Counted from the first letter of the stretch, positions 17,447 to 23,096 are shown. The stretch is DNA of 64,000 nt from Adineta vaga (GCA_021613535.1 CP075497.1:6758001-6822000); one strand, 5' to 3'. Translations and numbers: made by a program. The notes: generated by a model from the letters alone, not told the origin.

Positions 17447-18333
17447 TAGATCATTTGTATCTGAAAATTTGAATTTATTTTAAACGTTATTTCATATTTG
17501 TTCTTTTTATGATTGTTTGGTAGATTTTTTTGATAACGATATTTCAATTGCAAAAAAATACATACATAATAATCTTGATCGAACAGAGGAGAAAGGGAAG
17601 AGAAGAGAGAGAAGAAGAATCTCTTATAAACAATTATAGGTATTCTATGTAACAACCAATTGACAAATCAATACCATGATGTACGTCTATTGAACTCTAA
17701 AATTCATCGGATTAATTATCAAATACAAGAAAATGTTATTAATGACGTGAGAAAAGATCATTAATACGATTTTTAATGAAATAATGCAAAATATAGAGAA
17801 ATTAATAGATGTCGCTGGTAGTCATCCGAGGGTAAATGGAATTTTATGAAACTAATCAATCATATAAATATTCTGATTAGATTTTTTTTATTGAAAAGAA
17901 AATCTAATGTTTATTTGCACGCATTTTTTATTAGAGACTGTAACAAACTTTTTCTTTCTTCTTCTTTTTCTTCTTCTTCTTCTCTTTTCCCCCCTTTCAG
18001 TTATGTACAATATCTATACAGACATTGAGAAATAAAGAATCAGCAAGAGAAAAAAAGAAAAAACGCAAGATTCATCTACGAGTAACTCTTCTCCGTCCTT
18101 TTCTCTGGCACGATGTATATACATTAACACAGTATATGCATACATCATAACCTTCCCATTCGCAATCCTCTCTGGTCGCTCACACCTGTTTCATAAAATA
18201 TGTCAAAAAAAGAGAACGAAAAAGAAAAAGAATCCGTCGATGACGTCGTTTACTATGTTTCTATTTCAAATCGTTTGATGAAACCAAATTAAATAGACGT
18301 CTTTTCTTTTTATTCTATGCTTTTCTTATTTCT

Positions 18334-20465
18334 ATGATTATGATATTCGCAATATATCTACTATTATTATGTCTACCTTTTGTTCATTTAATCATTCCTG
18401 ATACATGGTCATCAACATCAACGAATTGTGTTTGGCATGTATACACGTCTAACGATCATTTAAGTAAAAGAATCGATTTACGAGATATTCGAAATCAACT
18501 TTTAACGTAAGATTTTATTTTCATTAATTTAATGTCAATATTTGTTTTTATTAGTTTTAAGTTGAATGATTCAACTTATTATTTTAATCCATGTAAAACA
18601 TTTAACCTTCCAATTAATGAAGATCCACATGTAGTCAATGGCGAACAATGTCATAATGTGTTAGGTTGTAAACGAATTGAACAAAGAAAAGATTATTATG
18701 AATATTATACAATTGCTCTTCGATTCAATTCAACAGTATTACCTCAAAGAACATCATTAACCACTCGATATTATGGAGCGAAGTAAGAAAAATTTAATTT
18801 TAGAAAAAATACGTTGTTTTTCTTTTCTTATTCAGATCATATGCCAATCAAAGTATTGATGTTGAATGTGATTGTAATCGACGAATTCATCGTGCACAAT
18901 TAAAATTTGTTAAATATCAACATACAAAAATGCCAGTAGGATTAGATTTTGATTGTAAAACTAACTAATGATATGACACGTAGGTTTTTTCTTTAACGCA
19001 TCGTTGTTGCTGTCCAAATGTTTGTGGAGGTATTTGTATATGTTTAATTTTTCAAAAATTATAATGTATTTTTTTATTTCAAATAGGAAATACATTCCCA
19101 AAAGGACTTTTATTAACGCTTCTTCTAGTTATTTTATTCATCATTGGAACAGCTGTATGGATCTTTTTTCAATGTCGACGACATTATCCTGAAAGAAATG
19201 CGTATGGAGCGATAGCAACTAGTAAGTATGATTCAGCTTTTCTTTTTGTTAATTATTTGCTTAACTTGAATGCTTAGCTGATCTAAACATTAATACATTG
19301 GAACCATCACAAGTACTTAAAATTGGTCTAACAGACTCAATTCATCGAAATGGAACATCAAAACGAACTCGTAGTCGATCAATAGTTCCTGTTCTTGAAA
19401 ATTCCACTATATCATCACAAGATTTTAAAATAGTTAAACGGTAAGAATGCAAATTTTCTTTGAATAGAATTTGAATGAATTGAATTTTTCAGATTAAGTG
19501 TTGGTGAATTAGGTGGTGAAGTAAGTGAAGGACGTTGGAATGATAAATTAGTTGCTGTGAAAACCTTACGTATTGGTGTGCATCCCGAGAAATTTTCTCA
19601 GAATGACAAAACATATCTTGAGAATGAAATTGGTTTATTAAGTCATGTTCGTCATAAGAATTTAGCCGCTGTTATTGGTATTTGTTTTGATATTGATATA
19701 TATCCTCGTATACTTTTATCGTTTGCTGAACATGGTACAATTATTGATTTTATTCGACGTTTTCCCACGAAAGTTGACTGGTCATTAAGATTATCTTGGT
19801 GTATAAATACATCCGATGCACTTGAATATTTACATCAATCAAAAATTCTACATCGAAATTTAAAATCATCCAATCTTTTAATTGGTGTTGATCTACGTGT
19901 ACATGTTTGTGATTATGGTCTCATATCAATTCTTCAACCATTACGACAAGCATGCGATAGCGAACGTTGTTTATGTAAATTAAGTCATCCAGCATTACCT
20001 GTTTCGATTCGTTGGTCAGCACCAGAGATTCTTTCAAATCCGTCCGATAGTTCGAGATTTAATCCACCTTGTGATGTTTATTCATTCGGTGTATGTCTTT
20101 GGGAACAAATTCGTTTAGAACAACCTTATGCTGAAATTAAAGACGAAGCAGAAGTTAGTCGAATGATTGTCGAAGGTATTCGTTTGACACCATTTGAAGA
20201 AACAGCGACAATTGTTATGCCAGATTACAATCAATTAATGAAAGCTTGTTGGAATGAAAATCCAAATGATCGACCGACATTTGAACGTATCGGTCAACTT
20301 TTACGAGAAGCAATACCTAAGGTGAAACAATTTCAAAAAATGTCATTGAAAAGACTATCTACGACGACTAATGCAACTGATATACAAGAAGAACATTCAC
20401 TTTTATTAAGACTTGATTCCAGATTATCAAATGATACACCCAAAACACCTAATCCAAATGTCTAA
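18334..20465 (+). CDS. Type I membrane receptor-like pseudokinase: signal peptide, Cys-rich MRH (mannose-6-phosphate receptor homology)-like ectodomain, TM helix, TKL-type kinase fold with HRN/DYG
   Basis: Seven exons splice in consistent phase: MIMIFAIYLLLLCLPFVHL (signal); C..RIDLRDI...TYYFNPCK...C..VLGCK...IDVECDC...LKFV...VFSLTHRCCCPNVC; TM GLLLTLLLVILFIIGTAVWIFF; YGAI; kinase LVAVK, ENEI, HRNLKSSNLL, DYG, WSAPE, DVYSFG. Confidence 0.85.
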
Positions 20466-20640
20466 AAATAAATAGTTGAGAAAAACAAAGCGAATTTTCA
20501 GTGAGTTTTTATCTGTGAAAAATACATCTGATATTTTGTAATAAATTAAAACAAAAACACCAGGTGTTTATCTATTCTCACACATATTTATACTCTGATT
20601 ATAAATGCTCTAAAAAAAACTATTCATACTGTTATAAAAC

Positions 20641-21378
20641 ATGCAGATCTTCATCACAGTAGTAGTGTTTTCACTAATTACGTTATATACACCTATCTAT
20701 AGTTGTATAGTTAAAGCAAATCCGACATTAAATGTACGTCAAACAGCTTCAGCATCTGGAACAATTGTGAAAAGTCTTTATCAAGGTACAACTGTCAAAT
20801 GCTTAGAAACGAAAAATGGTTTTTGTCGTGTTGGTACTGATCAATGGGCATCTGCTGAATATATTAATTGTGCTACATCAAAATCAGATTCATATGAAAA
20901 CACCGCACCTAAAGCTGATTATACACGTAAAACATGGCGTGGAGTTAAATTAAATCAACGTACAATCGATATGATTTTACGTGCAGAAGTCTATATGGAA
21001 CAAATGGGTGTTGGTGGTTTCCAATTTTCTTTGAGTCAAGGTTCATATTCATCTAGTGTTGCTGCCAGTGCTGGTACACATGATGGAGGAGGTGCTATTG
21101 ATATTCGTACGTCCGTTGTTAATAATGATAAGAAAAAAGTTGATACAATGGTTGTTGCTTTACGTAAAGCTGGTTTTGCTGCCTGGTCACGTGGACGTGT
21201 TGCTGATAGTTTTCAAAATAATAAACATATTCATGCTATTGCAATTGGAGATCGAGAAGCAGCATCAGGTGCTGTTAATCAAGTAGCAAGTTTTAAACGT
21301 GGTCGAAATGGACTTAAAGGTGATGGTGCCGATCCAGATGCCTATTTAGGCCGGGCAACACCAGCATGGGCTAAATAA
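20641..21378 (+). CDS. Secreted bacterial-type peptidoglycan hydrolase: signal peptide + SH3b + LAS-type (M15-like) Zn-peptidase; candidate horizontally acquired gene
   Basis: Intronless 245 aa ORF. SH3b-like LNVRQTASASGTIVKSLYQGTTV...QWASAEYI. Catalytic-type domain SQGSYSSSVAASAGTHDGGGAIDI...ALRKAGFAAWSR...HIHAIAIGD...GRNGL carries the Hx6D and HxH Zn-ligand pattern and resembles actinobacterial/actinophage lysin domains. TATAAA at ~20600; AATAAA at ~21374 and ~21406. Confidence 0.85.
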   Translation: MQIFITVVVFSLITLYTPIYSCIVKANPTLNVRQTASASGTIVKSLYQGTTVKCLETKNGFCRVGTDQWASAEYINCATSKSDSYENTAPKADYTRKTWRGVKLNQRTIDMILRAEVYMEQMGVGGFQFSLSQGSYSSSVAASAGTHDGGGAIDIRTSVVNNDKKKVDTMVVALRKAGFAAWSRGRVADSFQNNKHIHAIAIGDREAASGAVNQVASFKRGRNGLKGDGADPDAYLGRATPAWAK

Positions 21379-21834
21379 AATTAGTTTCCCCTGTGAAAAA
21401 CTTTTAATAAATGAAAGATTACGATGAACTATTTATTTCTCCAATGTATGAAACGCTCCATATTTGTATTCTGTATAACATATAGGTACTAAATAATGAT
21501 TCTTCATAATAGAAATAATAGTAACATATGTTAGGAAAAGGTTAGAAACATGTGTATGTATTACCGTGAGAGTAAGATCAAACATTATTGACATTAAAAA
21601 TGATATTTTGTGATAACAAGTGTTCCGAATATCCGACTATTAACTGTCGATGAATTCTCTCATAACTTCGTTTTATATTAGTGACTATATTCTTTTGTTA
21701 TTCATCATAATTACCTTGGCGACCTTTATCATATCTGTCGCGCCATCAAATCTAAACTTCAATATCATCATACGATGATTGATAGCCCTATTTTATCTTG
21801 TACATGATCTTAAACTTTTTCAGTCGAATAACCT

Positions 21835-22034
21835 TGTTTTTATTAATGCGACACGATAAACATTTATGTAGTTCTGTGCGAGTTTTCTTTCTTTCTCGAC
21901 GTACACATGTAAAGTTCTCATTTTGTAACACGATGATCTAACGAAAGGTAGATCAGAAAAAACAATTGAAATACAAGATGAAAACATCAAGATTCAACTG
22001 AGAACATTTGTTATCTGAATTTAATCATGATATT
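21835..22034 (+). repeat. Direct repeat, copy 1 (~200 bp)
   Basis: Aligns by eye to 24137-24312; includes the identical core acgtacacatgtaaagttctcattttgtaacacgatgatctaacgaaaggtagatcagaaaa. Confidence 0.9.
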
Positions 22035-22631
22035 CGATTCGAATACGTAGGATATTCAAGTTTTTGAGGTAATCAAAATGAAGTTGTCAAGAAGAAAAGT
22101 TGGACACGATTTTCGTTCACCAGGTGTTTTTCAGTTGAGAGAACATATGATAATGCATAGTCAAAGCTTTTAAGACGTTCATTTATTCTTAACATTCGAA
22201 ATTCGAATACCCATGTTGAAGTCGTATGACCTCTAGTTTAAAATAAAGGTCGAAATTTGTTTAGACAAAACATATGAATGAGTTCAGTATAAAATCAAAC
22301 CATATCAATGAGAGAAAATGCCCTTTATTTATTGTTTCATATTTACAATATTTTAATTTTCAAGTCCGACTGAACTGAATATCATAATAACACGAAAAAA
22401 AAGAAAAGGAAAAATATAAAATAAATTTCAGTAAAATCGATACGATTAATGATGACATCTGCTGAGATATTCTCTCCAAATTAAAGGTAAACGTGAACAA
22501 ACGATATTATAATTTTTGGATTAGTCTCGTTCGTTTACACTCACATTTTCTCAGTTTTAAAACCTGTTTTCTTAGTTCGAATTCTCCCACCTCTCTTACT
22601 TTCTTATTGTTTTAGTAGAAAAAGCCAAAAA

Positions 22632-22954
22632 ATGTCACATGTTCACGTCCCACTGCCAAGAACATCGACGGCAAAACCTTCAATTTTCAAAAAATATCGC
22701 TTAATCGAACGCAAAAGTATAGGTTCATTAGAATGAAAAATCGAAAGTTTTCTTTTCTTTTACATCTAGAAAATTCGATTCAATATTCACATGGAATTTT
22801 GCATTCGACAAAATTAGAAGATGCTAATCCTCGTACTCATACAGGAAAAAGTCAAAACTCACATCCAAATGAATTCCATAATGAAAATAAACGTACAAAA
22901 ATGAAAATGGTTAGATTTCTTCAAGACATTGAACCATTTGATCTTGATGTTTAA
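22632..22954 (+). CDS. Small two-exon orphan protein (~90 aa) with a C-terminal RVxF-like motif
   Basis: ATG at 22632 MSHVHVPLPRTSTAKPSIFKKYRLIERK; a GT..AG intron joins in phase to NSIQYSHG...KRTKMKMVRFLQDIEPFDLDV*. Confidence 0.5.
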
Positions 22955-23096
22955 AAAAAAAGATAGGAAAAATTCATTAACTAAAACAATAAAACGTTTC
23001 TGTTCACAGACGGACGACCATATATAAAAAAAAAATTCTGAGCGACTACGCCGTCCACGATGTTTATTCATCTAATTTATATATATATATAAGGAA

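Follow-up and report, generated by a model that had tools for sequence, protein, structure and literature searches.

We examined if an intronless open reading frame in the genome of the bdelloid rotifer Adineta vaga could be a bacterial cell wall hydrolase gene that has been taken over by an animal, and if so, whether it is expressed as a rotifer gene, what its product may do, and from which bacteria it came. The ORF lies at positions 20641..21378 of a 64,000-nucleotide stretch of contig 6 (GCA_021613535.1, CP075497.1:6758001-6822000), referred to as the window; all coordinates are those of the window and all features described for the gene are on its plus (+) strand. The host assembly is chromosome-scale (100.8 Mb in six contigs) and AT-rich (~30% GC). 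The coding sequence runs from ATG to TAA in a single uninterrupted frame of 245 aa plus stop (GC 0.378, GC3 0.147), and its product has three parts: a hydrophobic N-terminus, an SH3b domain and a 157-aa C-terminal catalytic domain. We consider it likely that the gene was acquired horizontally and domesticated, and that it encodes a secreted SH3b plus LAS-fold Zn peptidase acting on peptidoglycan. Protein and profile searches found a single copy in the genome; a paralogue or a homoeologous empty site was sought genome-wide and none was found, and the neighbouring kinase gene likewise had no close second copy.

Contigs of public sequencing runs were mapped to positions 18000-23000. Runs X1, X3 and X6 come from three different studies and were taken as RNA assemblies because the GT..AG joints within X1 and X3 were absent in the DNA run X19, X6 carried non-templated poly(A), and all three had zero depth over 21841-22508, an interval fully covered by X19. 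The ORF is carried on an unspliced, polyadenylated transcript with approximate limits of 20637..21431: one X3 contig of 741 nt covered 20637-21377 without a joint, X1 contigs covered 20637-20801 and 20860-21454, and no joints fell inside the transcript. Contigs of X6 showed non-templated A-runs after 21421-21431, i.e., 10-20 nt past the AATAAA at 21406..21411, which is the polyadenylation signal in use; a second AATAAA can be read at 21374. TATAAA occurs at 20600 and 20633, and the TATAAA box at 20600..20605 is ~32-37 nt upstream of the RNA contig 5' ends, two runs beginning at 20637. Contig ends cannot prove a transcription start, and these would place it near 20637, fitting the TATAAA at 20600. 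The original prediction, made from the sequence alone, had pointed to a TATA box and polyA signals and had made its case depend upon expression; both signals are in the sequence, poly(A) tails are in the RNA contigs, and polyadenylated, unspliced mRNA was present in assemblies from three studies. A scan for prokaryotic signals (sigma-70 promoters and terminators) gave nothing above chance level.

The gene upstream encodes a protein with Pkinase / PK_Tyr_Ser-Thr domains (gene region 18334-20559; last exon 19557-20465), and an X1 RNA contig revealed six introns within it, each of 48-57 nt with GT..AG ends (18506/18555, 18782/18836, 18935/18984, 19027/19085, 19221/19278 and 19439/19492). Together with the jointless X3 contig, this agrees with the original description of an intronless ORF among intron-rich genes. 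The kinase gene has its own poly(A) site at ~20559, leaving a gap of ~80 bp before the hydrolase transcript, and a DNA contig from run X19 (20034-20801), independent of the reference assembly, joins the kinase 3' end to the hydrolase ORF. Other ORFs of the window encode Tudor and RRM domains.

The closest public proteins were from Adineta ricciae (91%), A. steineri (88%) and Rotaria species (73-81%); public records label these orthologues merely as "SH3b domain-containing protein". The orthologue in A. ricciae and A. steineri is also intronless, with this same kinase gene on one side and F-box, RRM and ankyrin genes on the other, and a divergent metagenomic orthologue (71% identity) is directly downstream of a kinase gene; in Rotaria socialis and Rotaria sp. 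Silwood2 the orthologue has different neighbours and is on contigs of 0.17-1.9 Mb. Pairwise Nei-Gojobori comparison of six orthologues gave dN/dS values of 0.06-0.20; purifying selection has preserved the gene in bdelloids of different genera. Of the three parts, constraint is strongest on the catalytic domain, where non-synonymous divergence is lowest, and weakest on the signal-peptide region.

An intronless ORF of bacterial type might be bacterial contamination, or the product of an assembly chimera. This explanation is almost certainly wrong: the mRNA is poly(A)-tailed, the kinase neighbour is spliced, a DNA contig obtained independently bridges the two genes, and the window holds Tudor and RRM ORFs, on which grounds we exclude it. 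The low GC3 of the ORF, set in a genome of ~30% GC, also speaks against it when compared with ~77% GC in the bacterial relatives, as do the synteny conserved in three Adineta species and the long contigs (0.16-1.9 Mb) that carry the Rotaria orthologues. The linkage to flanking genes, on which the original prediction had laid weight, is provided by the X19 contig spanning 20034-20801, and a chimera at the junctions, the danger it had named, is ruled out by that contig and by the Adineta synteny.

Some variation was seen within and near the gene. Allelic variants occurred in both DNA and RNA at 20802, 20833 and 20859, two of them synonymous and one changing G65 to S. At full depth, X19 differed from the reference at 20746, where G>C alters a residue of the SH3b domain (A36P), and at six positions within the 3' UTR and flanking sequence (21421-21500), and the X19 sample therefore represents a slightly different lineage or allele set. 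The X19 DNA contigs broke within 21862-21960, their loose ends on either side not matching the reference, and from ~22008 the depth was halved. The pattern suggests an insertion, deletion or mobile element, heterozygous or particular to a strain, located between genes and downstream of the hydrolase gene. The next transcribed gene downstream (22617-23000) has a 53-nt GT..AG intron (22716/22770) in two RNA runs, and probably corresponds to the F-box gene found downstream in A. ricciae and A. steineri.

The first part of the protein, aa 1-21 (20641..20703), resembles a signal peptide with a predicted cleavage at YS/C. It is strongly hydrophobic (Kyte-Doolittle 11-mer mean up to 3.09, residues 3-13) and without a basic n-region, and the structural model has a helix at residues 2-14 at lower pLDDT. 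Among the orthologues this stretch is fast-evolving yet always hydrophobic, and the conserved block begins exactly at C22. The signal peptide named in the original prediction is therefore upheld as a predicted one, from the hydrophobic stretch and the pattern among orthologues, and the protein is probably secreted.

The cell-wall-binding SH3b domain occupies aa 22-78 (20704..20874). Pfam SH3_3 matched aa 29-75 at 36.2 bits against a cut-off of 27 (E 6.9e-9), and the model of this part matched the SH3b of the phiSM101 endolysin (4krt) with Z 9.8 and rmsd 1.6 over 61 aa (VIA-align), bearing out the SH3b-like module of the original prediction. The four cysteines it had placed in and around this module are C22, C54, C62 and C77; every one of the six rotifer orthologues has all four, and they are missing from the bacterial homologues. 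Judged from the sequences, these rotifer-only cysteines would fit an adaptation to the eukaryotic secretory pathway, and their positions on adjacent strands of the model suggest pairing of C22 with C77 and of C54 with C62. A linker, aa 79-88 (20875..20904), without regular secondary structure in the model and variable among orthologues, leads to the catalytic domain.

The catalytic domain comprises aa 89-245 (20905..21375). Both motifs of the original prediction can be read in it: H147-x6-D154 (HDGGGAID, 21079..21102), which would provide the first two Zn ligands, was invariant in 67/67 homologues, and H196-I-H198 (HxH, 21226..21234), predicted to hold the catalytic His and the third Zn ligand, was invariant or nearly so (H196 in 66/67, H198 in 67/67). 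Q133, S143, R175, R184, Q214 and G224 were also invariant in homologues. LAS-type Zn peptidases are defined by H-x(3-6)-D and H-x-H metal motifs (PMC6027127). Sequence libraries had little to say about the family. With the query alone, Pfam, NCBIfam and PHROGs gave no model for the catalytic domain; the curated Pfam M15 families (Peptidase_M15, VanY, Peptidase_M15_2/3/4) had no match to the protein at E <= 1; and across 67-82 homologues only stray traces appeared (Peptidase_M15_3, E 0.073, 2/67; HH_signal PF01085, E 0.095, 1/67; MepK, E 0.005, one or two members). Searching PDB by sequence, with the single sequence and with two profiles, gave nothing significant, the best coherent match being the Sonic hedgehog (Shh) N-domain at E 0.42.

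The fold was assessed from AlphaFold models (pLDDT 89.3 for the whole protein; pLDDT 93.9 and pTM 0.91 for the catalytic domain). When the catalytic-domain model was compared exhaustively with 48,161 chains (VIA-align), the best 16 rows were all of the LAS / Hedgehog-DD-peptidase fold, with Z 7.5-4.4: Hedgehog N-domains at 7.5 and 7.4 (99 aa, rmsd 2.5-2.7), VanX at 7.0, the Streptomyces Zn DD-peptidase 1lbu at 6.8, and further down VanXYg, VanYB, MepA, the T5 and Ply500 L-Ala-D-Glu endolysins, LdcB, LysB4, DacB and VldE. These Z values are moderate, and unrelated folds had Z <= 4.4 in the same comparison. Searching the Atlas by predicted structure gave a VanY cluster at TM 0.50 and a Peptidase_M15_3 cluster at TM 0.51; a language-model feature search, which furnishes leads only, had unnamed clusters as nearest and Peptidase_M15_3 at 0.89. 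Foldseek found no match in PDB at E <= 1e-3 for either model (best E for the catalytic domain, 0.24). Because the Z values are moderate and Foldseek E values were 0.24 or above, the assignment to the LAS fold rests upon the exclusive top matches, the Atlas matches and the motifs taken together; on the model, the C-terminal domain thus has the LAS fold of M15/Hedgehog type and is a predicted Zn metallopeptidase. The M23 lysostaphin-type fold was considered and rejected: lysostaphin (4lxc) matched through its SH3b only (model 14-78), and no M23 structure was among the catalytic-domain matches. Accordingly, of the "M15/M23 type" first proposed, the LAS fold of M15/Hedgehog type stands, whereas the M23 fold and membership in a curated M15 Pfam family do not. 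Since no curated M15 model matched, we assign the domain to a family of its own within this fold, not yet catalogued and with at least 1573 representative sequence clusters (E <= 1e-3).

The domain shares H-x6-D and H-x-H, and the fold class, with LAS-type peptidases (VanX, VanY, the S. albus G enzyme 1lbu, LdcB, Ply500, T5, and the M74 enzyme MepA), at Z 5.5-7.0 over 95-126 aligned residues; 1lbu (PG_binding_1 plus catalytic domain) and the endolysins also have a wall-binding domain followed by a catalytic one. It differs from them in having no significant match to any curated M15/M74 model, and in the family's own C-terminal extension (~aa 205-245) with invariant Q214, G224 and L225. Likeness to Hedgehog N-domains and to bacterial Hedgehog-like peptidases (PMC6027127) extends from the best structural matches to the shared elements H..G.AVDI, AGF.W and HIH; in the alignment of the family profile with Shh (E 0.42), the H-x6-D, AGF.W and HIH of the family fall on the H-x6-D, AGFDW and HIH of Shh, whose Zn ligands include H141, D148 and H183 (PMC6027127). 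However, that sequence similarity is not significant, PF01085 was seen in one of the 67 members only (E 0.095), the rotifer protein has no Hint autoprocessing domain, and its phylogeny is bacterial, not metazoan.

What the protein would do can be proposed from this architecture. After removal of a signal peptide cut before C22, the protein would be secreted; SH3b would dock it on the peptidoglycan of a bacterial wall; H147, D154 and H198 would coordinate a single Zn, H196 would lie close by in the active site, and an activated water would hydrolyse a stem-peptide or cross-link bond, so that bacteria are lysed or digested. Peptidoglycan is the indicated substrate because in bacterial homologues the domain is joined to PG_binding_1 (17/67), PG_binding_2/3, SH3_3/4, LysM or SPOR. 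The bond cut cannot be read from the sequence since LAS enzymes include DD- and LD-carboxypeptidases, endopeptidases and L-Ala-D-Glu peptidases. Bdelloids feed on bacteria, and digestion and defence are therefore both plausible roles. The secreted antibacterial or digestive role put forward in the original prediction thus appears likely, given a putative signal peptide joined to SH3b and a LAS-type Zn-peptidase domain.

Two other functions were weighed. The protein might have kept the LAS fold without cleavage and serve as a peptidoglycan sensor or binder in pattern recognition, as some LAS-fold proteins, e.g., Hedgehog ligands, mainly bind (PMC6027127) and the protein has two modules capable of wall binding; but the residues predicted to bind metal and to take part in catalysis have all been kept, with no or almost no variation in rotifers and bacteria alike, and among the three parts non-synonymous divergence is lowest in the catalytic domain, which makes a non-catalytic role improbable. 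Alternatively, an active enzyme might cleave something other than wall, such as an endogenous or dietary D-amino-acid peptide or an extracellular-matrix glycoprotein. Hh/DD-peptidase domains have been argued possibly to cleave proteoglycans (PMC6027127), and the sequence does not show which bond the family cuts; still, we give this substrate a small chance, as SH3b in the rotifer protein and the consistent PG_binding_1/2/3, LysM and SPOR fusions in bacterial homologues all concern the wall, and the enzymes closest in structure all have peptidoglycan peptides as substrates. A bolder version of the preferred reading, a secreted peptidase acting on peptidoglycan, would make the family a distinct peptidoglycan peptidase class with its own bond specificity, retooled by bdelloids into an immune effector, not a digestive one, its SH3b stapled by disulfides, and part of a larger, horizontally assembled wall-targeting arsenal; this proposal is rather unlikely.

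We then considered the source of the gene. Among the 120 matches listed, no eukaryote other than bdelloids was named, and only bdelloids and bacteria appeared; broad metazoan homologues, the finding that the original prediction had said would tell against it, were not among them. Matches beyond the 120 listed all had E > 5e-31, so the alien index is > 45 in any case. The best non-rotifer match was a 261-aa SH3 plus catalytic protein from a Planctomycetota MAG (E 2e-51, 49% identity over 88% of the query), and Myxococcota proteins with PG_binding_1 plus the catalytic domain had 55-62% identity in that domain. When species-representative genomes were scanned, Myxococcota and Planctomycetota ranked highest (52-54%), then Streptomyces, Kribbella, Amycolatopsis and Micromonospora (41-51%), and then Chloroflexota and Saccharibacteria.

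Trees were built on the catalytic domain alone: a quick tree of 157 rows and a careful one of 74 rows spanning all groups, with near-duplicates left out. The rotifer proteins formed one clade on both (SH-aLRT 100 on the quick tree; support 100/100 on the careful one). On the careful tree they were sister (98/90) to seven bacterial SH3b plus catalytic proteins from Planctomycetota-labelled MAGs, together with one protein having a signal peptide and catalytic domain only (P0121), and the rotifers with this sister group lay inside a Myxococcota/Planctomycetota clade (99/98). The bacterial origin that had been proposed is therefore borne out by a rotifer clade nested among bacteria. Most probably the two-domain gene moved as one piece, its donor being related to the Planctomycetota-labelled organisms. 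That SH3b came along in this transfer is argued from the catalytic-domain tree together with the architecture common to both sides, as the SH3b sequences have diverged too far for proof: the rotifer region and that of a sister bacterial protein (P0021) gave no significant pairwise BLASTP match (E 1.8). GC is 38% and GC3 15% in the rotifer ORF, compared with a gene GC of 76-78% in the bacterial sister genes, and this host-like composition argues that the transfer is old, before the Adineta-Rotaria split.

The more particular source first proposed, Actinobacteria or their phages, does not agree with these data. Streptomyces, Kribbella, Amycolatopsis and Micromonospora have many members of the wider family, and the likeness to actinobacterial and actinophage lysins noted earlier holds for that wider family but not for the nearest relatives, which are Planctomycetota-labelled MAGs; Actinomycetota form a separate group, distant from the rotifer clade across both trees, and their identities (41-51%) are below those of the Myxococcota/Planctomycetota-type proteins (52-62%). 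Among 50,697 phage records only one matched, a metagenomic siphovirus with 63% of the domain at 42% identity, and no PHROG exists for the catalytic domain. Descent from Actinobacteria or an actinophage is thus very improbable. A phage endolysin was rejected on the same count: with a single matching record the family is nearly absent from phages, and an origin as a phage lysin is not supported.

The history that we favour is that a bacterial gene was taken up horizontally by an ancestor of Adineta and Rotaria and then domesticated, in the course of which it would have gained a compact TATA promoter, an AATAAA/poly(A) 3' end, fully host-like codon usage, a eukaryotic-style signal peptide and four new cysteines in SH3b. 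Comparable cases are on record: the tick Dae2 amidase is a horizontally acquired, domesticated wall hydrolase (10.1101/2020.04.10.036376); GH25 lysozymes were acquired horizontally across many eukaryotes (PMC4241558); mites acquired an NlpC/P60 endopeptidase and an M15-type D-Ala-D-Ala dipeptidase (PMC9113151); and Trichomonas acquired NlpC/P60 enzymes with SH3b domains (10.1101/320382). The rotifer gene is like these in being a bacterial wall gene fixed in a eukaryote, with eukaryotic expression and secretion signals (the latter predicted) and under selection, and it is like the Trichomonas enzymes, which were among the structural matches of its SH3b, in having kept the bacterial SH3b. It is unlike them in its catalytic class, an uncatalogued LAS family instead of an amidase, lysozyme or NlpC/P60 enzyme, in its bdelloid recipient, and in its apparent Planctomycetota/Myxococcota-like donor. 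We found no description in the literature of this bdelloid gene or its catalytic family. Foreign transcripts of bdelloids include enzymes of peptidoglycan catabolism, mostly ancestral to the sampled species (PMC4632278), and since acquisition of peptidoglycan-degrading genes is thus already on record for bdelloids, and likewise for other animals (PMC9113151), the general picture is unchanged. The locus offers a clean, fully linked case of an animal with a domesticated bacterial cell-wall enzyme that has a new, predicted signal peptide and lineage-specific cysteines. The uncharacterised catalytic family is the more interesting part of the finding, as it draws attention to a large branch of LAS-fold peptidases that has escaped annotation; these are frequent in Myxococcota, Planctomycetota, Actinomycetota and Chloroflexota, and could yield new bacteriolytic enzymes.

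The surroundings of the closest bacterial SH3b plus catalytic gene were also noted. On a Planctomycetota MAG contig (L086, 1-5200; DNA of 75% GC) this gene has several Ser/Thr protein kinase genes next to it, and an ECF sigma factor / zf-HC2 pair is close by. The adjacency to a kinase that it shares with the rotifer gene is probably coincidental, because the rotifer kinase is a spliced eukaryotic gene.
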